From: Macrostomum lignano
Taxonomy: Eukaryota
Length of the DNA stretch: 64,000 bases
Direction: 5' to 3'
Assembly: GCA_002269645.1 (NCBI GenBank)
Contig: NIVC01001914.1
Location: 124,001-188,000, forward strand
Under the pieces are notes generated by a model, which was not told the DNA's origin, did no database searches, and saw only the letters and a program-made list of their open reading frames with translations. The first letter of the stretch is position 1. Each line of letters starts with the position of its first letter. Shown here in pieces: positions 29,901-47,557 of this stretch. The translations under genes and the position numbers were made by a program.

Positions 29901-32657
29901 ACCTGTCTACCCAGTATACCTGTCTACCCAGTATACCTGTCTACCCAGTATACCTGTCTACCCAGTATACTGTTTACCAAATCTACCTGTCTACCCAGTA
30001 TACCTGTCTACCCAGTATACCTGTCTACCCAAACTACCTGGACACAATCTACCTGAAATGAATCTGAAAACTGCCACTCCACCCAGCTCGGCTCCTTCCC
30101 ATCTCCTCACCCGCAGGCGCCGGCACCCGGAGCCGGACCTCATGGCCTCCACCTACAAGTCCTTCAGCTCCGGCAAGCCCTACGCCATGGTCTCCCCCCA
30201 CCCCAGCCTGACCAGCACAGACGAGACCTCCATTGACCAGACCAACAAGGTGTTCAGCACTCTGCTCAGCGCGAATCATCCCATTGTTGGGAATAACAGT
30301 GAGTGACCGCTGCGCTCAGTGAGCTGGATCTCAAATTTATCAGTGATGGAGTGCAGAGGCTGGAATTAGATCCCTGAATGGCAAGAGGGGGGCGGAAGAG
30401 AAGGGGCGGAAGAGAGGGGGCGGAAGAGAGGGGATGGAAGAGAGGGGCGGAAAAGAGGGGGCGGAAGAGAGAGAGGCGTCGGAATAGTGGGGGCGGAAGA
30501 GAGGGGTGGAAGAGAGGAAGGAAGGAAAAGAGGGGCGGAAAAGAGGGGCGGAAGAGAGGGGGCGGAAGAGAGGGGTGGAAGAGAGGAAGGAAGGAAAAGA
30601 GGGGCGGAAAAGAGGGGCGGAAAAGAGGGGCGGAAGAGAGGGGCGGAGGAGAGGGGGCAAGAGAAAGGGGCAGAAGAGAGGGGGGGAGGGGCCTATCACC
30701 AGCCTCCAGAAGAGACACCAGTCAGCTTCTAACCTCAGTTCAAGAACAGTCTGCACTGTTTCGTCCGCACTTATCCTACAAACATCAGCAACTTATAACA
30801 CGTACTTGATTAGCAAAGTTCAGTGCTTCAGACTCCACAATAAAGTTGATAAATTCGTTAATTGAATCAATTTATTCTGTCGGGCCAAGTTCGCCTGCCC
30901 TGAGCCAGGGTGGGGTGGCCCACACAAAGGCTGATTGATTGGCTGTGGATGTCCCGGCTCCCGGCTCATTCAAGAGGAATAGGCCCGGATTAGGATGAAG
31001 CTTAGTGATGGCTAAGGATACTAGCATATCATTATTAGCAGCGTTCAACTTGAATTTTTATATATTCGGTAACGCCAAGCCTGAGCATGCCATCAGAGCC
31101 AGTCCAGGTTCATCTGAGGTCACTTTGTCAATCCTAAATCTGAATACGACTTGATTTTATAACCCAATGTAACGGAAAGCATAGTTATGTACAAACTTAA
31201 CTACTGAGCTGAAGTCTAGTCAGTAGAAATATAGGAATTTTATAAGCTTTTTTTCGGCAAAATCTGATTACAGGCTCCCTGGCATCAGATTGCATTGAAA
31301 TGGAGCTGTGCGATTGTCGTAATTATGGTCTGTGAACCCCTGAAATTAACCAATTAATCAGGAATAATCTCACCTGTAACTGGCCTCTCAATTAATTCTT
31401 TCACATTGGCAACCTGATAGCAGTTTACGGAACTATATGGGATAAATTTGACTCAAAACCTCACATAGCCTGTTAACCTTCGAAACTTTCCTATATAAAA
31501 GCTATACTACTCATACTGCTGGTCAGTAGTGCAGCGCTAATGCAGATCGTAATTCACAACTCACACTGGTAGTTGTAAATAGCAGCTAGGCAACAAAAAT
31601 GCTAATATTTCTGCTTCTACAAGAACTATATCTATAAACCATCAATCCAGACGCATCTAGTCACTCCTGACACCCATCTATAGACACTCCTGACACTCAT
31701 ATATAGACACTCCTGACACCCATTTATAGACACTCCTGACATCCATTTATAGACACTCCTGACACCCATTTATAGACACTCCTGACACCCATTTATAGAC
31801 ACTCCTGACATCCATTTATAGACACTCCTGACACCCATTTATAGACACTCCTGACACCCATTTATAGACACTCCTGACACCCATTTATAGACACTCCTGA
31901 CACCCATTTATAGACACTCCTGACACCCATTTATAGACACTCCTGACACCGATTTATAGACACTCCTGACACCCATTTGTAGACACTCCTGACATCCATT
32001 TATAGACACTCCTGACATCCATTTATAGACACTCCTGACATCCATTTATAGACACTCCTGACACCCATTTATAGACACTCCTGACATCCATTTATAGACA
32101 CTCCTGACATCCATTTATAGACACTCCTGACACCCATTTGTAGACACTCCTGACATCCATTTATAGACACTCCTGACATCCATTTATAGACACTCCTGAC
32201 ACCCATTTATAGACACTCCTGACACCCATTTATAGACACTTCTGACACCGATTTATAGACACTCCTGACACCCATTTATAGACACTCCTGACACCCATTT
32301 ATAGACACTTCTGACACCGATTTATAGACACTCCTGACACCCATTTATAGACACTCCTGACACACATTTATAGACACTCCTGACACCCATTTATAGACAC
32401 TTCTGACACCGATTTATAGACACTCCTGACACCCATCTGCAGTCACTCCTGATGCCCATCAATCGTTCGTAGAATATTTTTAGACTTGTTTTAACCTTCA
32501 ATATAAATTTTTGTTACACAATTGCTACAGAGAATTAATTTAATGTCGCTTCCCAATGTCATCCCCGATTGCAGACCTGGAGTCGGGGTCAGACAACAGC
32601 GGCACATTCCTGCACCCGGGCCGGCAAAGAAAAGTCATTTATGAAGTTGTCGTCTGA
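11582..32657 (+). CDS. ed: Echinoid/Fred-like Ig-superfamily adhesion receptor (7 Ig + FN3 + degenerate FN3 + TM + PDZ-binding tail); 5' signal-peptide exon unresolved
   Basis: Exons 11582-11941, 18840-19166, 20403-20531, 20633-21506, 22158-22294, 22517-23419, 29067-29280, 30117-30298 and 32575-32657 all have AG/GT boundaries and matching phases, and join into one open frame of about 1069 codons. Seven C..W..YxC-type Ig domains, FN3 (GPPDPPTNL), hydrophobic TM and C-terminus RKVIYEVVV resemble echinoid (7 Ig, 2 FN3, EIIV). Orthology is from architecture, not a search. Confidence 0.85.
13312..14075. repeat. 14-bp minisatellite (GATAGAAAGTGAGA)n, interrupted at 13550-13650
   Basis: Direct reading. 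Confidence 0.95.
14835..15870. repeat. 20-bp minisatellite (AGTGAGGAGGGACAAGGAGG)n
   Basis: Direct reading. Confidence 0.96.
16509..16911 (+). mobile_element. tRNA-derived SINE in the ed intron
   Basis: A-box-like GTGGTTACAGCATCGG, B-box GGTTCG at 16550, central CATCCAGCTATAAAATTGGTGCCAGCATTAGCTGGGGGTAA resembling conserved invertebrate SINE domains, and an (ATT)n-like tail. Confidence 0.6.
17215..17690. repeat. GA-rich low-complexity tract
   Basis: Direct reading. Confidence 0.93.
18840..19166 (+). CDS. ed: ed-like exon: Ig domain 2
   Basis: atcgcag|ca acceptor, t|gtgagt donor; [18 protein letters not shown]...IVCHTAHP. Confidence 0.88.
19255..20335. repeat. 21-bp minisatellite (GTAGACTTGAGTAGGTTTGCG)n filling the ed intron
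   Basis: Direct reading, about 50 units. Confidence 0.96.
20403..20531 (+). CDS. ed: ed-like exon: first half of Ig domain 3 (missed by ORF track)
   Basis: ccgcag|ac acceptor, cag|gtaaaa donor; joins to give [18 protein letters not shown]. Confidence 0.85.
20633..21506 (+). CDS. ed: ed-like exon: Ig domains 3-6
   Basis: ggcag|ag acceptor, ct|gtgagt donor; [38 protein letters not shown]. Confidence 0.92.
21518..22052. repeat. 39-40-bp minisatellite containing GCCAATCAGA
   Basis: 13 intact units plus 1 degenerate. Confidence 0.95.
22158..22294 (+). CDS. ed: ed-like exon: end of Ig domain 6
   Basis: caccag|c acceptor (phase 2), t|gtaagt donor; [25 protein letters not shown]. Confidence 0.88.
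22517..23419 (+). CDS. ed: ed-like exon: Ig domain 7 + FN3 + degenerate FN3
   Basis: cttcag|tt acceptor, a|gtgagt donor; [27 protein letters not shown]; [30 protein letters not shown]. Confidence 0.92.
23681..24375 (+). pseudogene. Tc1/IS630-like transposase remnant
   Basis: Paired-like HTH ([41 protein letters not shown]) followed by stops, and a C-terminal-like piece [11 protein letters not shown]; no catalytic core. Confidence 0.5.
25350..26112. repeat. (CTCACTGCT)n 9-mer (25350-25566) followed by CT-rich tract (25620-26112)
   Basis: Direct reading. Confidence 0.95.
26655..27052. repeat. 45-bp tandem repeat, about 9 copies
   Basis: CTCAGAGCCTAGGCTTACCAGAGGTCAAGTCCCTCAGTTTCAGGA units, no spacers. 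Confidence 0.96.
27366..27985. repeat. 14-bp (GAGGGAGAGAGGGT)n
   Basis: Direct reading. Confidence 0.96.
28785..29022. repeat. 17-bp minisatellite (ATTGGGTAGACAGGTAG)n, upstream arm
   Basis: Direct reading. Confidence 0.93.
29067..29280 (+). CDS. ed: ed-like exon: transmembrane helix and juxtamembrane region
   Basis: ttgcag|tg acceptor, ct|gtgagc donor; [25 protein letters not shown] followed by RNR. Confidence 0.88.
29290..30055. repeat. 17-bp minisatellite (ACCCAATCTACCTGTCT)n, inverted downstream arm, with an AGTA-variant block from about 29735
   Basis: Exact reverse complement of the upstream unit. Confidence 0.95.
30117..30298 (+). CDS. ed: ed-like exon: cytoplasmic domain
   Basis: cccgcag|g acceptor (phase 2), a|gtgagt donor; [16 protein letters not shown].. 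Confidence 0.8.
30384..30690. repeat. GA/GGCGGAA-rich degenerate repeat
   Basis: Direct reading. Confidence 0.85.
31660..32450. repeat. 23-bp minisatellite (ATAGACACTCCTGACACCCATTT)n in the last ed intron
   Basis: Direct reading. Confidence 0.96.
32575..32657 (+). CDS. ed: ed-like terminal exon with PDZ-binding motif (RKVIYEVVV*)
   Basis: gattgcag|ac acceptor, phase 1; translates [27 protein letters not shown]-stop. Confidence 0.85.
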
Positions 32658-33705
32658 TGCCGCGAACAAATCGCCGCATATATGTACGATAGTGTATACA
32701 TACTACTCACGACGCCATTAACGACAGTAGTATAATTTCTGGAGCGCACATTTTGAAAAATAATTTCGGGCGGCTAAAAATCGCCAAGCATTTGTCTTTC
32801 AGGTCTCTCCGCATGTACTGGATTGTCACAATTCATCTGCTAACTGTATTTGATTGATTTTTAAAACTCAAATTCTCCTACTTATGAGTAGAGTCTATAG
32901 CGCGAAATGCAATTTTATTCGAAGCTGTATCTTTTGCGTAGCTCATAATTTTGCGAATCAGCGATTAAATTGGGCTAAATTTCATTCACCCCGCCATGCT
33001 CATATATCTGCTCACTCGCACAATCTAGTCAAAAATGTTAGACCATGCCATTTTAACAAAGCAGCAATATTAACAAAGTTATATTTGTGAAGCGCAGATT
33101 GTACAGAGGGATCAATTTGCTTATCTGTAATTATAATGATTAGTTATCTTATCAGTGTTCTGATGATCTTATTAATTAATTTATCACTGCTCTGTTTGAT
33201 CGACTGGGTAGCCAATTATAACAAATCAAATGCCGTCTCAAAGTTAAAGTTAACCTCAAGCCTGCCAAGTTTTGTGTTGTAAAACTTTCTGTATTAATTC
33301 TCTAGTATAATTGTTAATAATTCGCTGTTGGAAATTTCCCATTGCAATATATGTAAACATGTATTTTTACCTTCGAATAAATTTGTTATACGAGTGTAGC
33401 TAAAATATTTTGTACTTTTATGATAAGGTAAGAAACTCGAACCTCTACTTGTTTGGAAAAATAAAAGTTCTAACAAATAAAAAACTGGATCATTGATTTT
33501 GTACAGCTTCTGAGTCTATTTAAAAGTTTTATAGAAAATCTGTTTTAACTTTTTTTTCTACACGGTAGGAAGTATTACGAAAAAAACTCGTTTTCGCTAC
33601 TTAAAGTAGCATGATTTCCGATGAACTACTAAAAATATTAATTTGTTTTGAAGCTATTAAAATCTGAATTCCCAGTTCTACTCAATGGTCGATTTGAATC
33701 AAAAT

Positions 33706-33980
33706 TCAATAGGACGAATGTATGAAGCGGTCGCGACCTCGGTTGAACTCTACAACGCCGCGCCGGCAGATAGTGATGTTGCCCAGACTCCTGTCGTGAT
33801 AGAAGACGCGCGAGGCGGCAAATCCCTGGGCTGGCGTCATGCTGGCGTTCCAGGCTGGCAGGATTCGAGCCTGGGCGTGCTCGCAGCACAGGGTGTGCGC
33901 CTTCAGCGCCTGCGGCTCCGCGTAGGCACGGTGGCAGGCCGGGGCGCCGGGACAGGCAAAGCGGTACGTCTCCATGGCAA
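33706..33980 (-). CDS. C2H2-type zinc-finger exon; probable terminal exon of the BicC-like gene (alternatively a separate 89-aa gene)
   Basis: FAC-x5-C-x3-Y-x5-L-x2-H-x5-H pattern (FACPGAPACHRAYAEPQALKAHTLCCEH); GC-rich island; acceptor tttttctag| at 33981, phase 1, matching the 41948 donor; GCCATGG at 33975 could also serve as a start. Confidence 0.65.
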
Positions 33981-34115
33981 CTAGAAAAATGTATGAAAAT
34001 TATAGGAATAGGGATAAGGCGAACCCAACGACATTTTGGGCTTAAAATATCTAAAAAATTTAAACAGAAACAGGAGACCAGCTTTAGGGACGACTTTATC
34101 GACTCAAGCTTTTAT

Positions 34116-37100
34116 CAGGTGCCCCCGGCTGTGTCGAACAGGTACCCCCGGCTGTGTCTAACAGGTGCCCCCGGCTGTGTCGAACAGGTGCCCCCGGCTG
34201 TGTCTAACAGGTGCCCCCGGCTGTGTCGAACAGGTGCCCCCCGGCTGTGTCTAACAGGTGCCCCCCAGCTGTGTCTAACAGGTGCCCCCCAGCTGTGTCT
34301 AACAGGTGCCCCCGGCTGTGTCTAACAGGTGCGGCCCCCCGGCTGTGTCTAACAGGTGCGGCCCCCCGGCTGTGTCTAACAGGTGCCCCCCGGCTGTGTC
34401 TAACAGCTGCCCCCCCGGCTGTGTCTAACAGGTGCCCCCGGCTGTGTCTAACAGGTGCCCCCCGGCTGTGTCTAACAGGTGCCCCCCGGCTGTGTCTAAC
34501 AGCTGCCCCCCCCCGGCTGTGTCTAACAGGTGCCCCCGGCTGTGTCTAACAGGTGCCCCCGGCTGTGTCTAACAGGTGCGGCCCCCGGCTGTGTCTAACA
34601 GGTGCCCCCGGCTGTGTCTAACAGGTGCGGCCCCCCGGCTGTGTCTAACAGGTGCCCCCGGCTGTGTCTAACAGGTGCCCCCCAGCTGTCTAACAGGTGC
34701 CCCCCAGCTGTGTCTAACAGGTGCCCCCGGCTGTGTCTAACAGGTGCCCCCGGCTGTGTCTAACAGGTGCCCCCCGGCTGTGTCTAACAGCTGCCCCCCC
34801 GGCTGTGTCTAACAGCTGCCCCCGGCTGTGTCTAACAGGTGCCCCCCGGCTGTGTCTAACAGGTGCCCCCGGCTGTGTCTAACAGCTGCCCCCCGGCTGT
34901 GTCTAACAGGTGCCCCCGGCTGTGTCTAACAGGTGCCCCCGGCTGTGTCTAACAGCTGCCCCCCCCCCCGGCTGTGTCTAACAGGTGCCCCCGGCTGTGT
35001 CTAACAGGTGCGGCCCCCCGGCTGTGTCTAACAGGTGCCCCCCGGCTGTGTCTAACAGCTGCCCCGGCTGTGTCTAACAGGTGCCCCCCGGCTGTGTCTA
35101 ACAGCTGCCCCCCCCGGCTATGTCTAACAGGTGCCCCCGGCTGTGTCTAACAGGTGCCCCCGGCTGTGTCTAACAGCTGCCCCCCGGCTGTGTCTAACAG
35201 GTGCCCCGGCTGTGTCTAACAGGTGCCCCCCGGCTGTGTCTAACAGGTGCCCCCGGCTGTGCCTAACAGCTGCCCCCCCGGCTGTGTCTAACAGGTGCCC
35301 CCCAGCTGTGTCTAACAGGTGCCCCGGCTGTGTCGAACAGGTGCCCCCGGCTGTGTCTAACAGCTGCCCCCCCGGCTGTGTCTAACAGGTGCCCCCCCCG
35401 GCTGTGTCTAACAGGTGCCCCGGCTGTGTCTAACAGCTGCCCCCCGGCTGTGTCTAACAGGTGCCCCCCGGCTGTGTCTAACAGCTGCCCCCCGGCTGTG
35501 TCTAACAGGTGCCCCCCGGCTGTGTCTAACAGCTGCCCCCCGGCTGTGTCTAACAGGTGCCCCCCAGCTGTGTCTAACAGGTGCCCCCGGCTGTGTCTAA
35601 CAGGTGCGGCCCCCCGGCTGTGTCTAACAGGTGCCCCCGGCTGTGTCTAACAGCTGCCCCCCGGCTGTGTCTAACAGGTGCCCCCGGCTGTGTCTAACAG
35701 GTGCGGCCCCCGGCTGTGTCTAACAGGTGCCCCGGCTGTGTCTAACAGGTGCCCCCGGCTGTGTCTAACAGCTGCCCCCCGGCTGTGTCTAACAGGTGCC
35801 CCCCGGCTGTGTCTAACAGGTGCCCCCGGCTGTGTCTAACAGCTGCCCCCGGCTGTGTCTAACAGCTGCCCCCCGGCTGTGTCTAACAGGTGCCCCCGGC
35901 TGTGTCTAACAGGTGCCCCCGGCTGTGTCTAACAGGTGCCCCCCAGCTGTCTAACAGGTGCCCCCCAGCTGTGTCTAACAGGTGCCCCCGGCTGTGTCTA
36001 ACAGGTGCGGCCCCCGGCTGTGTCTAACAGGTGCCCCCCGGCTGTGTCTAACAGGTGCCCCCAGCTGACTAACAGGTGCCCCCAGCTGTGTCTAACAGGT
36101 GCCCCCGGCTGTGTCTAACAGGTGCGGCCCCCGGCTGTGTCTAACAGGTGCGGCCCCCCGGCTGTGTCTAACAGGTGCCCCCGGCTGTGTCTAACAGCTG
36201 CCCCCCCGGCTGTGTCTAACAGCTGCCCCCGGCTGTGTCTAACAGGTGCCCCCCGGCTGTGTCTAACAGGTGCCCCCGGCTGTGTCTAACAGCTGCCCCC
36301 CCCGGCTGTGTCTAACAGGTGCCCCGGCTGTGTCTAACAGGTGCCCCCGGCTGTGTCTAACAGCTGCCCCCCCCCGGCTGTGTCTAACAGGTGCCCCGGC
36401 TGTGTCTAACAGGTGCGGCCCCCGGCTGTGTCTAACAGGTGCCCCCGGCTGTGTCTAACAGCTGCCCCCCCCGGCTGTGTCTAACAGGTGCCCCCGGCTG
36501 TGTCTAACAGGTGCCCCCGGCTGTGTCTAACAGGTGCCCCCCGGCTGTGTCTAACAGGTGCCCCCCGGCTGTGTCTAACAGCTGCCCCCCCGGCTGTGTC
36601 TAACAGGTGCCCCCCCCCCGGCTGTGTCTAACAGGTGCCCCCGGCTGTGTCTAACAGGTGCCCCCCGGCTGTGTCTAACAGGTGCCCCCGGCTGTGTCTA
36701 ACAGCTGCCCCCCGGCTGTGTCTAACAGGTGCCCCCGGCTGTGTCTAACAGCTGCCCCCCGGCTGTGTCTAACAGGTGCCCCCCAGCTGTGTCTAACAGG
36801 TGCCCCCCGGCTGTGTCTAACAGGTGCGGCCCCCGGCTGTGTCTAACAGGTGCCCCCGGCTGTGTCTAACAGCTGCCCCCCGGCTGTGTCTAACAGGTGC
36901 CCCCGGCTGTGTCTAACAGGGCGGCCCCCGGCTGTGTCTAACAGGTGCCCCCGGCTGTGTCTAACAGGTGCCCCCGGCTGTGTCTAACAGCTGCCCCCCG
37001 GCTGTGTCTAACAGGTGCCCCCCGGCTGTGTCTAACAGGTGCCCCCGGCTGTGTCTAACAGCTGCCCCCCGGCTGTGTCTAACAGGTGCCCCCGGCTGTG

Positions 37101-39440
37101 TCTAACAGGTGCCCCCCAACTGTGTCTAACAGCTGCCCCCCGGCTGTGTCTAACAGGTGCCCCCGGCTGTGTCTAACAGCTGCCCCCCGGCTGTGTCTAA
37201 CAGGTGCCCCCGGCTGTGTCTAACAGCTGCCCCCCGGCTGTGTCTAACAGGTGCCCCCGGCTGTGTCTAACAGCTGCCCCCCCGGCTGTGTCTAACAGGT
37301 GCCCCCTGGCTGTGTCTAACAGGTGCCCCCGGCTGTGTCTAACAGGTGCCCCCCAGCTGTCTAACACGTGCCCCCCAGCTGTGTCTAACAGGTGCCCCCG
37401 GCTGTGTCTAACAGGTGCGGCCCCCCGGCTGTGTCTAACAGGTGCCCCCGGCTGTGTCTAACAGCTGCCCCCGGCTGTGTCTAACAGGTGCCCCCCAGCT
37501 GTGTCTAACAGGTGCCCCCGGCTGTGTCTAACAGGTGCGGCCCCCGGCTGTGTCTAACAGGTGCCCCCGGCTGTGTCTAACAGGTGCCCCTCCGGCTGTG
37601 TCTAACAGCTGCCCCCCCCCCGGCTGTGTCTAACAGCTGCCCCCCGGCTGTGTCTAACAGGTGCCCCCCGGCTGTGTCTAACAGGTGCCCCCGGCTGTGT
37701 CTAACAGGTGCCCCCGGCTGTGTCTAACAGGTGCCCCCGGCTGTGTCTAACAGGTGCCCCCGGCTGTGTCTAACAGCTGCCCCCACCCGGCTGTGTCTAA
37801 CAGGTGCCCCCGGCTGTGTCTAACAGGTGCGGCCCCCGGCTGTGTCTAACAGGTGCCCCCGGCTGTGTCTAACAGCTGCCCCCGGCTGTGTCTAACAGGT
37901 GCCCCCCGGCTGTGTCTAACAGGTGCCCCCGGCTGTGTCTAACAGGTGCCCCCGGCTGTGTCTAACAGGTGCCCCCGGCTGTGTCTAACAGCTGCCCCCG
38001 GCTGTGTCTAACAGCTGCCCCCCGGCTGTGGTAACAGGTGCCCCCGGCTGTGTCTAACAGGTGCGGCCCCCGGCTGTGTCTAACAGGTGCCCCCGGCTGT
38101 GTCTAACAGCTGCCCTCCCGGCTGTGTCTAACAGGTGCCCCCCCGGCTGTGTCTAACAGGTGCCCCCGGCTGTGTCTAACAGGTGCCCCCGGCTGTGTCT
38201 AACAGCTGCCCCCCCCGGCTGTGTCTAACAGGTGCCCCCGGCTGTGTCTAACAGCTGCCCCCCGGCTGTGTCTAACAGGTGCCCCCGGCTGTGTCTAACA
38301 GGTGCCCCCGGCTGTGTCTAACAGCTGCCCCCCCCGGCTGTGTCTTACAGGTGCCCCCGGCTGTGTCTAACAGGTGCCCCCCGGCTGTGTCTAACAGCTG
38401 CCCCCCGGCTGTGTCTAACAGCTGCCCCCGGCTGTGTCTAACAGCTGCCCCCCCGGCTGTGTCTAACAGGTACCCCCCGGCTGTGTCTAACAGCTGCCCC
38501 CCCGGCTGTGTCTAACAGCTGCCCCCGGCTGTGTCTAACAGGTGCCCCCCGGCTGTGTCTAACACAGGTGCCCCCGGCTGTGTCTAACAGCTGCCCCCCG
38601 GCTGTGTCTAACAGGTGCCCCCGGCTGTGTCTAACAGCTGCCCCCCCGGCTGTGTCTAACAGGTGCCCCCGGCTGTGTCTAACAGCTGCCCCCCCGGCTG
38701 TGTCTAACAGGTGCCCCCCGGCTGTGTCTAACAGCTGCCCCCCCCGGCTGTGTCTAACAGGTGCGGCCCCCCGGCTGTGTCTAACAGCTGCCCCCGGCTG
38801 TGTCTAACAGGTGCCCCCGGCTGTGTCTAACAGGTGCCCCCGGCTGTGTCTAACAGCTGCCCCCCGGCTGTGTCTAACAGGTGCCCCCGGCTGTGTCTAA
38901 CAGGTGCGGCCCCCCGGCTGTGTCTAACAGGTGCCCCCGGCTGTGTCTAACAGGTGCCCCCCCGGCTGTGTCTAACAGGTGCCCCCGGCTGTGTCTAACA
39001 GCTGCCCCCCCGGCTGTGTCTAACAGGTGCCCCCGGCTGTGTCTAACAGGTGCCCCCGGCTGTGTCTAGCAGCTGCCCCCGGCTGTGTCTAACAGGTGCC
39101 CCCGGCTGTGTCTAACAGGTGCCCCCCTGTGTCTAACAGGTGCCCCCCGGCTGTGTCTAACAGGTGCTGTGTCTAACAGCTGCTCCAGTTGTGTCCAACA
39201 GGTTCCCAATTGTGTCTAACAGTTACCTCTCAGCTGACGTGTCTAAAAGCTGCCCCCAGTTGTGTATAACAGTTGCCCCGGCTATGTCTAACAGGTACCT
39301 CCCAGCTGTGTCTAAGAGGTGCCCCGGCTGCAGTCTCTAACATGTACAGTTGCCCCGGCTGTGTCTATAAACAGGTGCCCCAGTTGTGTCTAACAGGTGC
39401 CAACTAACTGCCTAACAGATACGCCAGCTGTGTCTAACAG
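34116..39440. repeat. 5.3-kb satellite of about 22-23-bp units GGCTGTGTCTAACAG(G/C)TGC(C)n
   Basis: Direct reading; variable C-run; degenerate edge at 39170-39440. Confidence 0.98.
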
Positions 39441-40569
39441 ATGTTCAGGCTACAATTGTCTAACACAAAAAAGCTCAAAAAACGGTGGCAAAAGCTGCCA
39501 CTAATCCATATCTTAAAGCACAATTGACAGCCAATAACTTACACTTCTCGGCAGCAAAGTCTACTTCTACACACTCGATTCTCTTGAGAAGACACAGTTA
39601 GATAAGCTTAAAACCTGCTCTTAGATACAGGCCACAAGTAGGAAGAGCTGCGTTGCTAAGAATGTGTGGCCTTCGAATAGAGCTCAGAGAGAGCGGGTTG
39701 GTGCACACAATTGCAAACCTTTTTTGGCCACTTTGCGGTGTACATGTACTCACAATTTGATAGCGCAATGTGGTCAAAGGACTCAAGACAGCAACTAAAT
39801 GTACATTTGAATGCACAGCGAATTTTGTCTCATTATGCATGATGCATAGCTGCTTTAATTGCTGCGTTGTGTAGAATTCGAGTACTTCAACTAGACAATT
39901 GCTGCACTGCAGTAATAATTAAAATAGTAATTCTATTCAGAAATTAAACTGCTTTTCCTTTACCACATCGTTCCACGTAGCTTCGTTAACAGACGATTTT
40001 TCTCACTTTTTTATCTTTAAAATTTTAAGAGAATAATCAAAGACTTCTACTGACAGTAGGATAAACAGTAAGTATATCGTACTTTTTTAGAAAATAACAA
40101 CAAATTGGCCGAGAAAAGCACTGGCAGCAATTGAACAGTTTTATTTACAAAAAACACAATTAAAAGTACAATTGAAAATGCCGCAATAAAAACAATAAAA
40201 CAAAAATAAAAAACACATTGCAATGCAGTTTCATTCTAATGGCTTTTCGAGCAATATTAATAATTAACCAATAAAAGAAAGCATTTCGAACTTCGTTAAA
40301 TTCTAGCGCTTTATATGGTTTTCAATGCGAATTCGAGAATTTAAACATATTTCCTCATATACTTATAGTAGTAAGTCGTGAGCATGATCAAATCAGTCCC
40401 GAATAGCTGACGGAAAACGATGATAAAATAATTAATAATAGACAATAAAAATAACAGTATGAAAATAAAGCCAAATTACAGTATTATAAAGCCATATATT
40501 GAGTTACTGCAGAGGTGAAGACGTGAAAATGAAAACAATGGGGTTTTGAGGATTTGAGATAATTTATTG

Positions 40570-41780
40570 AGGAATTAGGATTATTGATTGGGATTTGGGA
40601 TTGTTGACTGGGGATTTGGGATTTGGAATTATTGATGGGGATTTGGGATTGTTGACTGGGGATTTGGGATTTGGAATTATTGATGGGGATTTGGGATTAT
40701 TGATGGGTGGGGATTTGGCATTGTTGATTGGGGATTAGGGATTGTTGATTGGGGATTGGGGATTGTTGATTGGGGATTTGGCATTGTTGATTGGGGATTT
40801 AAGATTTGGAATTATTGATGGGGATTTGGAATTATTGATGGGGATTTGGGATTATTGATGGGTGGGGATTTGGAATTGTTGATTGGGGATTAGGGATTGT
40901 TGATTGGGGATTGGGGATTGTTGATTGGGGATTTGGCATTGTTGATTGGGGATTTAAGATTTGGAATTATTGATGGGGATTTGGGATTATTGATGGGTGG
41001 GGATTTGGAATTGTTGATTGGGGATTAGGGATTGTTGATTGGGGATTTAGCATTGTTGATTGGGGATTGGGGATTGTTGATTGGGGATTAGGGATTGTTG
41101 ATTGGGGATTTAGCATTGTTGATTGGGGATTAGGGATTGTTGATTGGGGATTAGGGATTGTTGATTGGGGATTAGGGATTGTTGATTGGGGATTAGGGAT
41201 TGTTGATTGGGGATTTGGCATTGTTGATTGGGGATTAGGCATTGTTGATTGGGGATTAGGGATTTTTGATTGGGGATTTGGCATTGTTGATTGGGGATTA
41301 GGGATTGTTGATTGGGGATTTAGCATTGTTGATTGGGGATTAGGGATTGTTGATTGGGGATTAGGGATTGTTGATTGGGGATTTAGCATTGTTGATTGGG
41401 GATTAGGGATTGTTGATTGGGGATTAGGGATTGTTGATTGGGGATTTAGCATTGTTGATTGGGGATTAGGGATTGTTGATTGGGGATTTAGCATTGTTGA
41501 TTGGGGATTAGGGATTGTTGATTGGGGATTTGGGATTATTGATGGGTGGGGATTTGGCATTGTTGATTGGAGATTAGGGATTGTTGATTGGGGATTTGGC
41601 ATTGTTGATTGGGGATTAGGGATTGTTGATTGGGGATTAGGGATTGTTGATTGGGGATTAGGGATTGTTGATTGGGGATTTGGGATTGTTGATAGGGGAT
41701 TTGGGATTGTTGATTGGGGATCATTTCGGACTCTAATCTGGAGATTAAAGTTTTTAGTCTCTCCGCATGGGATTTGACGT
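40570..41780. repeat. 21-bp G-rich minisatellite (TTGATTGGGGATTAGGGATTG)n
   Basis: Direct reading. Confidence 0.95.
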
Positions 41781-41948
41781 TGTTGGGATCATAAAGTTAA
41801 AATGATTGATTGGGATTTGGGAATAGAATAAAAATGGAAGTGAGCGACCTGCACTTTCAATTCAAACAAAATGCGCGGAGAAATAAAAATGAATTAAATT
41901 AAGAGATAAAGTTAGTTAAGACCAGTCAGTTCTCACTCTGCTGCTCAC

Positions 41949-42155
41949 CGATCTGCAGCCGAAGATGCCGCAGGCGAATCTCCATCATAAGATCCTCTTC
42001 ATCGTCGACCTCGCCGCCGTGGCGCCAAGCCGCAGTGTCGGGCGCCAGTTTTCGAGCTGACAGCGGCGCCTCCTGCGGCCGGCGGCGGCATGGATTCGGC
42101 TGGCTCGAATTCGAGTTCGAATGAAGCACTGGCTGAGCTCGGAGCCGATGGGACT
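41949..42155 (-). CDS. BicC: BicC-like exon 2 (symmetric phase 1-1, 207 nt)
   Basis: Pyrimidine-rich acceptor ctctctgcacactcaacgcag| at 42156 and donor atcg|GTGAGC at 41948; open frame SHRLRAQP..DDEEDLMMEIRLRHLRLQI. Confidence 0.6.
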
Positions 42156-42282
42156 CTGCGTTGAGTGTGCAGAGAGGGGATGAGGTGTCGTATCGAATAG
42201 AGCAAAAGTTGGCGCCAAATCCAGACGAAGAAAATCTGGCGCTAAATAAAAATGAACAAAGATGCAAAAGCAGCGAACTCAC

Positions 42283-43645
42283 CAGACTCAAATATCTGCA
42301 GGTTCCTCAGCAGGTCAGAAGACGGCAGAACTGGCTTAGTGGGTCGAAGCAGCAGAGCCGCTGGTCGAATACGCAGCTGCTTCCGCTGCTGCTCGGAATT
42401 CGCCGGCTGCCGGAGTTCAGGCGAGCGCGGGCCCGAGCGAGCGTTAGCCATGACGAACTGCTTCGGCGAATTCAAATAGAATGGCAGCTCTGGACAATTA
42501 GCCTTTGGCCAACTAAGCCGAACTCGTTGCCATAGCGACAAAAGCTGTGGCATGTTTTTCTGCGAAAGCAGCCATTTTACATCGAATAGTGCAGCAATAT
42601 TCGATTCGTGCGTCTCCAAAGAAATCTTCTGGCCGACAAAGAATCGTTTGAAATAAGCCGAATCGCTGAATGCGGCATTCGAGCTGCCGAATGCATCGCC
42701 GATGTTGCACTTGATTCGAACTTTGTAGACATCCTCGAGGATTTGAATAGCGTTTGAGTCGGTCAGATTCTCAGACACTGTGTTGGAAGCGATCAGCATG
42801 CTGATTGGCAGCGAGTTGGTCAGCAGAATCTTCGTCTTCAGAACCTTCATCGGATCCTGGCTAGAAATTTCCACAACGGAGTCGTCTTTCAGCTCGATAG
42901 TGACACCGATATCTTTGAAAAATGCATGCACAGCGGCGGCTGGCGTGGAGGATTCAATGCTGGACAGTTGGAAGCTCTTTGGAATCGCTCCGTTGACAGT
43001 CTGGACTACCTGGTTCCAGTGATTGATGGGAATGCGATCCGCAGTGTAGAGCTTCGACATTGGCTGGTTGAACTTGCGAACTAGGCTCTCCTGAATGAGA
43101 TTGGCAACAAAGACAACCTTAGAGCCGCTCTCTATGATGCCGCGGAGCACAAAAGTGGCGGGAGCTTCCTTCTCGACGGAAATAGAGATTGATTCGTAGC
43201 AAGCAATGGAAGCTATTCGACTAAGCTCGTTTGCGATGGCATCCGAAATCGATTGCAGACTAGGAAATACCATGCGGATGATGACTAGCTGGTTTCGTCG
43301 GATGTTTTGCACCGACGCGGTCAGAACCTCGGCCAGACGATCTTCCGCTTCTGGAGGGCATGGCTCGCGTTTTAAATCGAGCTCGGCCGGAGTGATGACA
43401 ACCTCGTCTGATCGCGACATGCCAGGCGTATCAGCAGATGATGAACTAGAGTCGCTCTGGATAAAAGCATCTTCCGAATTGCCTTTTAACTTTCGGCCTT
43501 TGTTGACAACTTCTGGAAAGTTGATCAGGGTCTTGGATGCCACCTGAAGCTTCTTATGGAAGCTACCCTTTTTCCCAATGAGATGACTGTGGTCGTCTCT
43601 AGACACGTTGATGCGCATAATGGGTCCTTTCAGTAGATGATACAT
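42283..43645 (-). CDS. BicC: Divergent Bicaudal-C/GLD-3-like multi-KH RNA-binding protein, exon 1
   Basis: MRINVSRDDHSHLIGKKG..LINFP matches the BicC KH motif LKMDVSHTEHSHVIGKGG..IHFP. Later blocks ATFVLRG, LTNSLPISML and ISLETHESNIAALFDVKWLL line up with the BicC KH/KH-like repeats (alignment from memory). Strong donor tctg|GTGAGT at 42282. Confidence 0.8.
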
Positions 43646-43737
43646 TGTTAAAGTTTTTAGTAGAAAAGCAGAAATAAAATCAGAGCAAAGAAAATAACGG
43701 AGTTATTTTCAAGCGGCTGGCGCTCTAAAAAGTTATT

Positions 43738-43827
43738 AGTATATAAGGAGATAAACTAATGGCTGGAACCAGTTAGGACGCCAGGCGGAATCCTATTGGC
43801 TGAAACCGCTCAACTACTCATGATTGG
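43738..43827 (-). promoter_or_regulatory. Candidate core promoter of the BicC-like gene (two CCAAT boxes plus a TATA-like element)
   Basis: ATTGG at 43795-43799 and 43823-43827 (CCAAT on the coding strand), TTATATA near 43740-43746, about 95 nt upstream of the ATG. Confidence 0.4.
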
Positions 43828-44811
43828 TCGAGGGCTAGACGGGGGTTCGTGTTTGCGGTGCAGAGGGAGGGGCAGGGAGGGGAGGGCTTGTGGTCTGGCC
43901 TAAGGGTGTAGGGAAGAACGATTCAACGTTTAACTTATTCCCAATATTCCCAATCGTTTTTAAAAGGCAGTGTTAAACCATACGTGCTTAATGTTAATGG
44001 GATAATTATTTCGAATATGCTTTTTACCATTGAAATGAATTTGCTTGTATCCATTATGCAAGTTTATGCACCCATTTGCAGGGAATTTTTAATGCGAAGA
44101 AAAATTAATAACAAATTCTGAAAACTGAAAATCCTGAAATACCATTTTCACGAGGTTCTTGTATAGTTTTAAAAACGGAATTCCCTTTTGCCGAAATGAA
44201 AACGTGTTTTGCCGTCTAGTTTATTTTTGCGATTTACTTCTGCTGGTGGAAGGACGGACTTTTACTGTTCTTGTTGTTGTTCAGCATTCGCGAAATCATT
44301 ACATATAATTCCAAAATGTTAAAGCGCATACGAAATTGATTATTTCTCACAGCAAGCACGCAACTATACAAGATCTTTCAACTAAATAATACTACGAATT
44401 ACGATACAAATAATTTAACAAGTATGCATGAACTGAGAAAACTGAACTGAGAGCAAGAGTTGATGACAACGTTAGCAACTAAAAATCTATTTAACCAAAA
44501 TCGCCATGCATTGAGACAGTTCACATTCATTTAAATAGGGGCATATTAAAACAAGTAAAATATAAGTGCTTTTTGAAAGTAGAAGATTAGCCTAATAAAA
44601 CAAAATCTAGAATGGCTCAAAACATATACAGTACAGATAGGATAAAATCATGTAACTCGTATAACTCATATTTTAGACGCAAAAAATAGTTATCTAAACT
44701 GAAAAATACTTATAGGATGTTGCAATTGTATAATTGCAAGTCACTGCACTGAATATGCTGATGATCCATCAGAAATTGCGGCAAAGAGTGCAGCAATTTA
44801 GAAGGCAGGCT

Positions 44812-45289
44812 TTAACTATTCTTAACAGCTTCGTGGTTGTAAGGACACTGAAATTTATTCGTCAAAATATTTAGGATTTTAAATGAAAATCATGGTATAC
44901 ACTTGAATTTAATAAAGATTGTAGAATGTACTTACATGTCTACACAAGTGTCCACAGCAATGTCCACGTTTCTTGTGGGCAAGTTCAGTAAATACTCGAT
45001 AACCAGTCGCGGGGTCAATGTAGGTATCTTCGCCGCGGTCAACCGCACATTTATGAGCCTGCTGCACTTCTGGCGGAAGCGCAGCCTGCGCTGTTGTTGA
45101 GGTTTTGCAATTTGAAGCACTAGGACTAGTGTCACCATCCATGATTTCGCTGTTAGATTTCAGGCCGCATGTGAATTGAAGCTGAACAGTTTTTAGCGAA
45201 CCCCCAGGACAAATAATTAAGCGAGAGCCTTGAAAGTAACGAGCATAAATGTTGGTTGCTTTCTGCAAAGCATCCAATCTTGGGATCAT
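44812..45289 (-). CDS. C1orf53: C1orf53-like / DUF5522 small cysteine-motif protein (exons 45289-44936, 44847-44812)
   Basis: AHKCAVDRGEDTYIDPATGYRVFTELAHKKRGHCCGHLCRH|CPYNH after removing an 88-nt GTAAGT..TTTCAG intron; the motif is typical of this family. Confidence 0.85.
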
Positions 45290-45638
45290 GCAAATAAAAA
45301 ATAAATAAACTGGTAAAGAATGAATATAATAGATGTTTCATTTAGGTAGGTCGGACCATTGTACCAGCTCTAGCCTGTAGTGGGTCTCTAAAACCTACAA
45401 AGGCAATTAAATTACGAAAGGTGGCTTAAAATAAAGACACAAAACGGTTTATCAATATTAGTGCAACTGCACGGCATAATCTAAAAGAGCTGGGACAAAG
45501 TGGCGCCACTTGCGCTAGTAAACACGGTTTTATTGCCTCTCCTGAAAGTAGAGACCCCAGTCTGCTAGTAGTCATAAAATTTCAAGACAACCGCCCCCAG
45601 CCCCGATAAGTAGCGCAATATTCAAAACAAGTCTGAGG

Positions 45639-45737
45639 TCACGTGAGGCGGGTAGGAGGCTTGGCTGTCCCGACTTGGGGTTTGTTTTGGTTGAAACTTT
45701 CTCACACTTTGGCTCGCGCTCCGATTGGTCAAATTGG
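45639..45737 (-). promoter_or_regulatory. Candidate promoter of the C1orf53-like gene (TCACGTGA E-box, two CCAAT boxes)
   Basis: TCACGTGA at 45639-45646, ATTGG at 45724 and 45733, in a GC-richer patch 350-450 nt upstream of the ATG. Confidence 0.35.
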
Positions 45738-47557
45738 CGGAGCAAACCTCGGCCGTAGCGTCATAAAACTTTCAACACGAAACCAAAAGTCAAACCAAAT
45801 AACCAAAACGTTGAATTGGTTCATAAAAACAACTTTATTTGACTAATTAATTGATTAGTAATTATAATGGCTTCGCAAAGGCTAGACAGACAGGCGCACC
45901 AGTAATAATACAACACGATTCCTTGAATTTCCCACGACCAACAAAACAACTTTATCTTTTGATAACAAATGCGTGGTGGGTGGGGCGATTAAATCTCAGC
46001 TGATGCCCGCCTCTTGAGGCCCTAGTGGGGGCGGCACCTACATACAAAACTTATTCAATAAAGCTAGGGACTCCCTACTTAATTTTCATATCGCATCATC
46101 ACACTAATTATTTTCACAAGACTGAAGTTATGAATCTAATGAAGATTTATGAAAGTGCTGCGCTGATTGCCATATAAGGAGATATAATCATGTTTAAGAC
46201 TCAAAATGGTATACATGCTAACATTGCGAAAAGGTGGTCAATACAAACTAATCTGCACAATAATCGTCCCTGAGACTGAGCTAATATAAGAACCACGGGG
46301 CCCTACTGTACAGTCCAGTCACTGTATGAAAGCGTCGTTATTGCTTCTAAGTCTGTTATAATCTTACTTGGTTACCTAAAGTGGTACAATGCAAATATTT
46401 TCTAAACAAAAAGCAAAAGTCGTCAATTATGTAAAAATCAATTAATAGCAAATATATAGCATCATAAAATATGAAATTGCTTTGCAAATTGCAATTTCAA
46501 TATATTTAAAATTGGATTGTATTGAAAGCCAGAATATTCACATGTAGAATTACACAATTTAATATATTTACACATTATTTACAAAATGTCAGTACACAAT
46601 AAAAATTTAATACAACTGGAATTAAGTGATGCGTGAATTTTATGTTAATGTCACTATATAAACAGTCAAATAATAAACAAACTAGATAGGAGTAGAAATA
46701 ATTAAGATCAAGATTTAAAACTGCAAACACGATAGTATTAAACCCGTGCTTTTATGTACTTTTAGTGTCTTAAACCCGAAAAATACACCATTAAAAATAA
46801 AAAGCTATTAACTAAAAAATCTAAAATGAAAGATCACATATCGGTGTGACTTTGACACAATAAAATTAAATAGTTAAAAAGCTCAATGGATAAATTATAC
46901 CCCTATGTAATTCAATGATGGAGGTGATCAGACAGGAAATATCTTGAATTTTAATTGCAAGAAAGCTGATGATAAATTTACGTTTTTTAAAATCACATGC
47001 GTGTTATTAATAAATTTAATTCGATGAATTCACTGGCAAAAGCGAGACCGGAAAGCAACAACATTGGGCACATTAAAAGAACAAACTAAAGTACAAAATG
47101 CTCTCAACAGAAGTAGCACAATTGTATAGCATGAATAAACTTGTAACTTTTACGAGCAAAATAATTTTTACAAACGGGTTAAAAATATTCTGCTGGCAGA
47201 TCTTATGAATCATTTAACATCAACAACCATTAATAAGCAAATAAAATTCAGTTACTCTTTTCTTTTTAAAAATCTAAAAAGGCAATAAAAGGCAACGGAA
47301 GTCTGCCTCACTTAGTAAAACAAATTGATCATCACACGATTACAGCGCAGGATGCAAATTTGATCAAATTTCTAATAAAAAATCAATCGATAATCTCAAA
47401 AGACAAATTTCAAAGTCGTGGAACTGGGTTCATTTAACAAAAGTACACACTATACTTAACTTTTTCTGGCACGTTTGGTACTATTTATACTACTACAAAG
47501 TAGGCACCAAAAGAAAATACACGAATTTTAGTTAGGAATTATTAAAACTTTGAATTT

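Follow-up and report, generated by a model that had tools for sequence, protein, structure and literature searches.

A divergent Bicaudal-C-like KH gene and a probably separate zinc-finger-like reading frame, spaced by satellite DNA, in Macrostomum lignano

Introduction

Bicaudal-C and its relative BICC1 are translational regulators of animals in which KH domains are combined with a SAM domain. The GLD-3 protein of C. elegans is reportedly a member of the same family that has degenerate KH domains and lacks the SAM domain, its KH array being said to serve as a platform for protein interactions. The gene described here, from the flatworm Macrostomum lignano, invites comparison with both. Like Bicaudal-C/BICC1, its product displays KH2, KH-like, KH3 and KH-like modules in collinear order, possesses the KH motif VS..DHSH.IGK.G...FP[DE], and carries the LP(L/I)-x-(L/M)-x linker motifs that open the KH-like modules. 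Unlike them, it is devoid of KH1, of the GxxG loop of KH3 and of SAM, and its aligned identity is only about 18%. The likeness to GLD-3 lies in the BicC-derived KH array, in the loss of most GxxG loops and in the missing SAM domain. No Pfam KH_GLD-3 model matches the protein, and a sequence/profile search of the PDB, which should cover GLD-3 structures if these are deposited, returned only a marginal vigilin KH. As no direct sequence link to GLD-3 was found, the resemblance probably reflects independent, parallel loss.

A sequence-only reading of this locus had proposed that the KH exons are spliced across an 8-kb satellite intron to a distant exon encoding a C2H2 zinc finger. We find the KH gene to be real and place the probability that the finger-like frame belongs to a separate gene at about three in four.

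Results

The window analysed is a 64-kb stretch of scaffold NIVC01001914.1 (assembly Mlig_3_7). It represents one (L002) of three genomic copies in which the KH locus is accompanied by a small ORF (the others being L001 and L003); a paralogue resides at a further locus, L004. At two of the three copies, the NCBI annotation keeps the KH gene (530 aa) apart from an 89-aa gene, which is called on NIVC01001914.1 and NIVC01000035.1; the 89-aa ORF carries no annotation at the L003 copy. The evidence behind the M. lignano annotation comprises RNA-seq, SL reads and poly(A) sites (PMC5730564). The features of the KH gene and of its upstream neighbour are as follows:

44909..45289, minus strand: DUF5522 gene, upstream same-strand neighbour (Pfam DUF5522, E = 1.8e-17)
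42283..43645, minus strand: KH coding exon 1 (454 codons plus 1 nt), with the ATG at 43645; equals the first 454 aa of PAA62639.1
43481..43618, minus strand: type I KH domain, residues 10-55; GKKG loop intact at 43565-43576
42572..43621, minus strand: region collinear with BicC KH2, KH-like, KH3 and KH-like modules, residues 9-358
42156..42282, minus strand: intron 1, 127 nt, GTGAGT...CGCAG; its removal is needed to give P0007 exactly
41926..42155, minus strand: coding exon 2 as deposited; TGA at 41928-41926, tail ...LRLQIGEQQSEN followed by the stop

The first two exons of the earlier proposal are confirmed: exon 1 joined to 42155-41926 translates exactly into GenBank PAA62639.1 (P0007, BOX15_Mlig030006g1, 530 aa), with the qualification that the deposited model reads through the second donor (G/GTGAGC at 41949/41948) to a stop seven codons on (...LQIGEQQSEN). 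P0006, P0007 and P0008, which model the three close copies, all carry this read-through tail. The DUF5522 gene is a separate 128-aa gene in the NCBI annotation, and the older UniProt models P0001, P0002 and P0009 wrongly fuse it to the KH gene. The tag borne by the KH gene in the window is "g1", and CCAAT and TATA-like elements are found upstream of it.

Several lines of evidence tie the protein to the Bicaudal-C lineage. Its N-terminal domain is recognized by Pfam KH_1 as a type I KH (PF00013; E = 5.5e-5, 23.3 bits against a cut-off of 21.5 bits; 23.8 bits for the 530-aa protein) and holds a long insert in the variable loop (about residues 46-80). The domain alone aligns with BicC KH2 (hhalign E = 1.4e-9), its motif VS..DHSH.IGK.G recalling the BicC consensus ...VSxTDHSHIIGKGG.... 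When the family alignment (A2) was compared with that of 17 genuine BicC proteins (A3), hhalign gave a probability of 97.6% and E = 3e-12 over 283 columns; the distal KH-like part by itself yielded E = 3.8e-4 versus 0.75 for a reversed control. Scores obtained with a BicC HMM were 22.8 and 35 bits, as opposed to 6.5 bits at most for 2000 shuffles. Secondary structure predicted by AF2 shows repeated beta-alpha-beta-beta-alpha blocks in the collinear region, at low confidence. These comparisons bear out the view of a BicC-like, lineage-restricted and re-tooled protein: a search with phmmer against 1.84 billion representatives retrieved relatives from Macrostomum only, and the BicC-specific Pfam models (KH_BICC1, PF22985, and KH_BICC1_1st) gave no match at E<=10 (true BicC matches these models strongly, Aphidius BicC reaching E = 3.4e-48 with KH_BICC1). 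By its sequence, the KH gene encodes a genuine, if highly diverged and Macrostomum-restricted, member of the Bicaudal-C lineage.

The departures from the canonical layout had also been read correctly. In place of the three GxxG loops of BicC (KH1, KH2 and KH3), the protein has a single one, GKKG at residues 24-27 (GRKG in the paralogue); the three distal modules are without GxxG, and the position equivalent to KH3 aligns without it. KH1 is missing: the alignment begins at BicC KH2 (profile column 105), KH_BICC1_1st does not match, and the minus strand between 43646 and 44908 is free of ORFs of 60 aa or more. Both paralogue groups retain the N-terminus MYHLLKGPI, as seen in paralogue P0003. Pfam searches at E<=10 with the 530-aa protein, with the 614-aa model and with the paralogues detected no SAM domain, and neither did a search at E<=1 of the unique DNA downstream, translated in three frames; a true BicC matches SAM_1 and SAM_2.

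Past exon 2, the gene runs into repetitive DNA:

40546..41721, strand not assigned: 21-nt satellite, about 54 copies (TRF), separating the donor of exon 2 from the alternative terminal exon
40120..40506, minus strand: alternative terminal exon and probable 3' UTR; the tail of UniProt model P0002 maps here
34116..39401, strand not assigned: 23/24-nt satellite, about 211 copies, 5.3 kb (TRF), making up most of the gap between KH gene and small ORF

A TRF copy comparison among the three loci puts the 21-nt array at 24-25 copies at the other two; for the 23/24-nt array the counts are 45 (L001) and 173 (L003). The UniProt model P0002 ends in ...LQIVTQYMAL, joining the 41949 donor to the terminal exon at 40506. 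This exon has an acceptor (CTCTGCAG/TAACTC), the tail V-T-Q-Y-M-A-L, a stop at 40486-40484 and an AATAAA at 40145-40140, its 3' limit (about 40120) being inferred; homeologous loci share 98.7% identity over this region. Two ends may be predicted for the KH mRNA from the deposited models: one in which the 41949 donor is read through (...GEQQSEN), the other in which the 21-nt satellite would be spliced out to reach the terminal exon at 40506, with its stop and AATAAA. Both would lie upstream of the 5.3-kb satellite. The 8-kb satellite intron thus loses ground, as P0002 joins the very same donor to a nearer, conserved terminal exon provided with a poly(A) signal.

The putative third exon, beyond the larger satellite, comprises:

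33976..33995, minus strand: acceptor-like site TTTTTCTAG/TTGCC just before the ORF ATG (GCCATGG), identical in the three copies
33706..33975, minus strand: 89-aa ORF, ATG to TGA, deposited as its own gene
33877..33960, minus strand: C2H2-like motif F-x-C-x5-C-x3-Y-x5-L-x2-H-x5-H (regular expression, six frames)

The three segments proposed earlier (43645-42283, 42155-41949 and 33980-33706) do form one open frame of 1845 nt (614 codons plus stop), with junctions GTGAGT / ...CGCAG and GTGAGC / ...TTTTTCTAG; it is the assignment of the third segment to the KH gene that is unlikely to hold, this segment being probably a gene of its own. Separate 530-aa and 89-aa genes are annotated at two loci, and the finger is absent from all KH-protein models retrieved from NCBI and UniProt (P0001, P0002 and P0006-P0009), which argues against a KH plus C2H2 architecture. 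The phase match on which the proposal was built is real; however, for an ORF whose own ATG lies 5 nt behind an AG, it would arise by accident about one time in three, and with two genes the in-frame join would be a coincidence of phase.

The alternative to be set against this, that a third coding exon (33980-33706) belongs to the KH gene, is reached through a 7,968-nt intron spanning both satellites, and gives rise to a 614-aa product as the main or a regulated isoform, strikes us as very improbable. It can call on the open frame, the GT/AG sites and the matching phase, on the conservation of donor, acceptor and frame (identical or intact) in the three genomic copies, and on the quality of the 41949 donor, a good GTGAG site used in P0002. 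Among the 849 AG dinucleotides downstream, a pyrimidine tract together with a phase-1 reading frame that stays open for 60 codons or more occurs just twice; the site at 33980 opens the zinc-finger frame and is the best pyrimidine-rich, frame-compatible acceptor downstream. The 89-aa ORF, with so little unique DNA ahead of it (see below), may also depend on transcription from upstream. Yet an RNA-seq-guided assembly gives separate genes at two loci, the deposited KH models retrieved lack the finger, donor and acceptor are separated by a conserved terminal exon that has its own stop and AATAAA, the 89-aa ORF possesses its own ATG in a GCCATGG context, and a fortuitous phase match is expected about once in three cases. 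Moreover, the older paralogue, 40% identical, is without a finger ORF: none was found at L004, either at the gene end or within 10 kb downstream, or in the aligned paralogue proteins P0003, P0010 and P0011. The NCBI annotation could nonetheless miss a rare KH-finger isoform.

Whether the 89-aa ORF makes a functional protein is a distinct question. What had been taken for a good C2H2 pattern is a partial one. The order of the ligands (C, C, H, H), the C-H spacing of 12 and the H-H spacing of 5 agree with classical fingers (zf-C2H2, PS00028), as do an F at -2, a Y at +4 after the second Cys and an L three residues before the first His. In contrast, the two Cys are separated by 5 residues instead of 2-4 (C-x5-C-x12-H-x5-H), so that the classical pattern C-x(2,4)-C-x3-hydrophobic-x8-H-x(3,5)-H does not apply; Pfam reports no zinc finger even at E<=10, and the finger would be a single one, in an 89-aa orphan protein with an unconfident structure model. 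The 89-aa query matches only itself among 5.8 billion clusters. A single-sequence AF2 model of poor confidence (pLDDT 48.5; strand 2-7, helix 21-42) agrees with a finger fold and falls short of demonstrating it.

These data would suit a scenario in which the ORF, called by TransDecoder, encodes no functional protein and lies in the GC-rich patch of a transcript that is non-coding or UTR-like, its C2H2-like pattern being fortuitous. The lack of homologues and of a Pfam match, the low pLDDT, the non-canonical Cys spacing and the missing annotation at L003 are in line with it, and other frames of the patch also hold overlapping ORFs. We nevertheless consider it unlikely. The ORF sits in a sharp GC island (64% GC, GC3 78%, AT-rich flanks) and starts in a good context; the stretch FACPGAPACHRAYAEPQALKAHTLCCEH that it encodes is the sole match to C-x(2-5)-C-x12-H-x(3-5)-H in the six frames of the window (about 128,000 codons). 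Furthermore, the three copies encode the same 89-aa protein at 100% identity, both differences from L001 (2 in 270 nt) are synonymous third-position changes and indels are absent; the immediate flanks, by comparison, show 3 mismatches and one gap over 140 nt, and 13 mismatches with 14 gap columns over 306 nt. The argument for conservation through coding is a modest one, because homeologues share about 99% identity in the KH intron as well, and identity alone is no proof of coding.

Discussion

The organization that we favor is one of two genes. Gene 1 (43645-41926, minus strand) would start at the equivalent of BicC KH2, with one KH predicted to be competent for RNA binding (GKKG), followed by three KH-like modules without GxxG and by an R/L/S/P-rich tail of roughly 130-170 residues. 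By analogy with BicC or GLD-3, it may be a post-transcriptional regulator that would contact RNA through its single intact KH and use the degenerate KH-like modules as a scaffold for binding proteins; without a SAM domain, the protein would not be expected to polymerise. The ORF of gene 2 (33975-33706), an orphan of 89 aa, is most likely expressed from a separate mRNA. Since only 140 bp of unique DNA separate it from the satellite, with no obvious room for a promoter, this mRNA may arise by SL trans-splicing or by splicing from an exon in the 5' UTR, and the site at 33976..33995 would be the corresponding acceptor.

Trans-splicing raises the prospect that the two genes are linked in another way. 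SL trans-splicing is widespread in M. lignano (PMC8629364, PMC5730564), and the intergenic spacers of its operons are inflated by repeats, for which a repeat-adjusted distance threshold of 1 kb was used (PMC8629364). One could envision a polycistronic precursor that traverses the satellite and is divided up, with polyadenylation near 40120 and addition of the SL by trans-splicing at 33980, the outcome being separate proteins with coupled expression. Besides this precedent, the spacing is suggestive: the gap from 40120 to 33980 measures about 6.1 kb, 5.3 kb of which is satellite, leaving about 0.85 kb after adjustment; the shortage of unique DNA upstream of the 89-aa ORF points the same way. 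At L003, the KH gene tag, Mlig021043g3, can be read, from this tag alone, as placing it third in a transcriptional unit, behind the upstream DENN and DUF5522 genes. On the other hand, the acceptor at 33980 is TCTAG and departs from the enriched SL-acceptor motif [T/C]TNCAG (PMC8629364), and the "g1" tag and upstream elements of the window KH gene speak for a promoter of that gene and are silent on the 89-aa ORF. Such an operon is possible, if on balance doubtful.

Even with two genes as the preferred reading, one could imagine that they are co-transcribed across the satellite and that the 41949 donor, if unpaired with 40506, cis-splices to 33980, an acceptor that would otherwise serve in trans-splicing, producing a regulated in-frame chimera. 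We give this only an outside chance. Were it true, the chimera would couple a SAM-less, BicC-like KH scaffold to a C-terminal zinc-binding module, and would represent a gene fusion just coming into being, in a genome that uses trans-splicing.

Results

The KH gene of the window (minus strand, 43645-41926) encodes a protein in which Pfam recognizes one KH_1 domain only, at residues 10-55 (23.3 bits). A phmmer search of 1.84 billion representative proteins matched only Macrostomum paralogues, so that any link to BicC had to be sought by profile-profile comparison; a PDB search with the 454-aa exon and the family profile gave nothing useful, its sole match being a vigilin KH domain at E = 1.2. 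A stretch of BICC1 KH2 (…VSHTEHSHVIGKGG…) was used solely to retrieve genuine BicC proteins from the database, and the profile of 17 of these, aligned from sponge to mammal, was compared with that of the Macrostomum KH family. The two profiles align with hhalign at 97.6% probability (E = 3e-12) over 283 collinear columns, family residues 9-358 corresponding to BicC KH2, KH-like, KH3 and second KH-like domains. The KH by itself gives E = 1.4e-9, and the distal part by itself E = 3.8e-4 (reversed control, 0.75). With a BicC HMM, two paralogues score 22.8 and 35 bits; 2000 shuffles reach at most 6.5 bits.

These results bear out the sequence-only reading of the gene as BicC-like but devoid of KH1 and SAM, and improve on the names in the databases. 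There is a single GxxG loop, as that reading held. The first KH domain is absent: alignment to BicC starts only at KH2, and the paralogues share a conserved N-terminus. Neither the protein nor the unique DNA downstream shows a SAM domain; from the KH gene to 32460, Pfam on three-frame translations of unique DNA yielded no SAM or other domain exon. The BicC-specific Pfam models do not match the protein, whereas they match true BicC at about E = 3e-48. With one GxxG, no KH1, no SAM and no BicC-specific match, the KH protein is best described, on profile evidence, as a very divergent BicC relative that lacks several of the defining BicC features. AlphaFold2, run on exon 1 from an alignment of 5 sequences, produced a model too poor for a fold search (pLDDT 39.9); its secondary structure, repeated beta-alpha-beta-beta-alpha blocks, is no more than consistent with KH-like modules.

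The KH family comprises two paralogue groups. That of the window has three near-identical genomic copies; the other (Mlig017380; P0003, P0010 and P0011) is 40% identical to it and has a different long tail. UniRef applies the name "SAM domain-containing protein" to P0005, P0012 and P0013 (A0A1I8HWL2, A0A1I8I7C9 and A0A1I8I834), which are fragments or fusions of the older paralogue. In none of them was a SAM domain detected by Pfam at E<=10 or by PDB sequence search, and the name was set aside as evidence for such a domain. At the paralogue locus L004 (NIVC01003415.1, 3474-12675), Mlig017380 too lies downstream of a DENN-domain gene, so DENN and KH were duplicated together as one neighbourhood; neither a DUF5522 gene nor the finger ORF discussed below is annotated there.

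The sequence-only reading had further joined the KH exons to a C2H2 zinc finger across an 8-kb satellite intron. The features that matter for this proposal, and for the arrangement of the locus, are as follows.

Features around the KH gene
44909-45289, minus strand: DUF5522 gene, upstream of the KH gene, with a DENN-domain gene further upstream on the same strand
40546-41721: 21-mer satellite, tandem array in the donor-to-acceptor gap
40145-40140, minus strand: AATAAA sequence after the 40506 exon
34116-39401: 23/24-mer satellite, tandem array in the donor-to-acceptor gap

The sequence facts behind the join are correct. Concatenated, segments 43645-42283, 42155-41949 and 33980-33706 make 1845 nt (614 codons and a stop), joined at GTGAGT/…CGCAG and GTGAGC/…TTTTTCTAG, and the terminal peptide of this frame includes FACPGAPACHRAYAEPQALKAHTLCCEH, the sole C2H2-type regex match in a six-frame translation of the window. 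A pyrimidine tract and at least 60 further codons open in phase 1 coincide at only two of the 849 downstream AG dinucleotides, one of which, the 33980 site, opens the finger frame. However, the third piece is in itself a full ORF from ATG to TGA, with its ATG 5 nt after the AG, so that the phase match had a prior of roughly one in three.

The deposited models also speak against the fusion: the finger is absent from every KH-protein model retrieved, and the transcript-based annotation contradicts it. That annotation started from genome-guided RNA-seq assembly; the transcripts were divided at SL trans-splice and poly(A) sites that had been mapped by experiment, and TransDecoder supplied the ORF calls (PMC5730564). 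The translation of exon 1 plus 42155-41926 is identical to PAA62639.1 (BOX15_Mlig030006g1, 530 aa), a model that reads through the second donor and stops following GEQQSEN. The models at the two other copies of the locus (P0008 and P0006) and two UniProt models that derive from the older assembly, ML2 (P0001 and P0009), end in the same way; P0002, also from ML2, splices from the 41949 donor into a 40506 acceptor and ends VTQYMAL-stop. The 40506 exon is 98.7% identical between homeologous loci, yet its seven codons vary (VTQYMAL / VIQYMAL / VIQYVAL), a pattern that fits 3' UTR rather than coding sequence. The finger ORF (89 aa, 33975-33706) is annotated as a gene of its own at the window locus and at the copy on NIVC01000035.1 (L001), and none occurs within 10 kb downstream of the paralogue P0003 at L004. 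The KH and zinc-finger architecture is thus probably an artefact, two neighbouring genes having been joined in frame, and its existence even as a minor isoform seems to us very improbable. We found no mention of Mlig030006, Mlig013258, Mlig021043 or Mlig017380 in the literature searched or in the supplements of PMC5816591.

We put the probability that the small ORF is a genuine gene at about three in four. It lies within a sharp GC island (64% GC, GC3 78%; flanks 28-35%), its ATG context is GCCATGG, and its protein is 100% identical across all three copies. Compared with L001 it shows just two nucleotide differences, both synonymous and in third position, and no indels; the adjoining DNA has 3 mismatches in 140 nt and 13 in 306 nt, plus indels. 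Conservation between homeologues was considered as proof of coding but downgraded: at about 99%, the KH intron is just as similar, which makes the local identity only modest coding evidence. No homologues were found, a search of 5.8 billion clusters returning only the ORF itself, and Pfam gave no match. The Cys spacing of the finger is non-canonical, and the single-sequence AlphaFold2 model is poor (pLDDT 48.5) and unsuited to a fold search. Two other ORFs share the GC-rich patch 33638-33984: one of 83 aa in a different frame of the minus strand (33638-33889) and, antisense, one of 99 aa (33685-33984). Extra ORFs are expected in GC-rich sequence, and an open frame within the patch is weak evidence.

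The small ORF and the KH exons are identical to scaffold NIVC01001914.1 of M. lignano assembly Mlig_3_7 (GCA_002269645.1), locus L002. Besides the window, the KH locus has two copies, L003 (NIVC01000981.1), about 0.5% divergent in the DNA beside the small ORF, and L001, 1-8% divergent depending on the segment. The gap between the KH exons and the small ORF consists mostly of satellite arrays. Both satellites occur in unchanged order at all three copies (L001, 7117-7615 and 8769-9853; L003, 12152-12689 and 13830-17970), with about 211, 45 and 173 units of the 24-mer and about 54, 24 and 25 of the 21-mer in the window, L001 and L003, respectively. Copy number therefore changes fast, and does so even in the comparison of window and L003, which by the small ORF are only about 0.5% apart in unique DNA. 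Long "ORFs" (up to 236 aa) at 40967-41602 (minus strand), 41067-41777 (plus) and 34211-39069 (plus) are satellite translations, such as PNPQSTI and GIVDWGL repeats, and should not be taken for genes. Further tandem arrays, at 31658-32459 and 30383-30687, lie within or adjoin the 3' part of a convergent plus-strand Ig/fn3-domain gene with its CDS end near 32657. Of the two arrays, one is a 23-mer (35 copies, 94% identity), the other a purine-rich 13/69-mer. Rfam gave no match over 32000-46000.

Could the KH gene and the small ORF belong to one operon-type unit? Repeat-inflated polycistronic units in M. lignano are commonly resolved by SL trans-splicing (PMC8629364), and just 140 bp of unique DNA separates the small ORF from the satellite. 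The L003 copy of the KH gene bears the tag Mlig021043g3; with DENN and DUF5522 genes upstream on the same strand, this tag suggests that the KH gene comes third, after them, in a single transcriptional unit. An operon-type relation between the KH gene and the small ORF is on these grounds plausible. We hold it as a tentative view, one that we would sooner doubt than accept. If true, the acceptor at 33980 would be real, but as a trans-splice site.

Other observations concern the upstream side. In the window copy, 43740-43830 (minus strand) holds two CCAAT motifs (gaccaatca and gccaatagg) together with a TATATA element, all some 100-180 nt before the KH ATG, which look like a promoter of the gene's own, consistent with its "g1" tag. 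In older UniProt models (A0A1I8HTV4, A0A1I8IVD1 and A0A1I8IWP1) the KH gene is run together with DUF5522 or with exons from upstream, in what looks like prediction chimerism. Compared with L001, the KH gene and its intron (42156-43645) are about 99% identical and the nearby unique intergenic DNA 91-97%; of seven substitutions in the exon, four change the amino acid. Gene conversion among the copies, and not simple purifying selection, may lie behind this pattern.

Discussion

A KH and zinc-finger architecture would have been the more interesting result, had it held. What the analysis leaves in its place is a link to BicC, which is of value to annotation, the family being deposited under no more specific names than "hypothetical" or "KH domain-containing".

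In germline and kidney, BicC proteins have a conserved role in regulating how mRNAs are translated, and they are believed to need SAM-driven polymerisation for it. Their KH-like domains, like those of GLD-3, are established scaffolds for partners. By analogy, the Macrostomum protein would most likely be a post-transcriptional regulator, in which the intact KH might contact single-stranded RNA and the modules without GxxG might form a rigid scaffold for partners. In contrast to BicC, whose SAM domains form head-to-tail polymers, it has no SAM, so polymers of this type would not be expected.

A flatworm family reduced to KH2 and the KH-like scaffold that follows it amounts to a natural deletion variant, comparable in this respect to nematode GLD-3. 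M. lignano is amenable to RNAi, in situ hybridisation and transgenesis, and the family could reveal, in a tractable animal, what the KH scaffold does alone.
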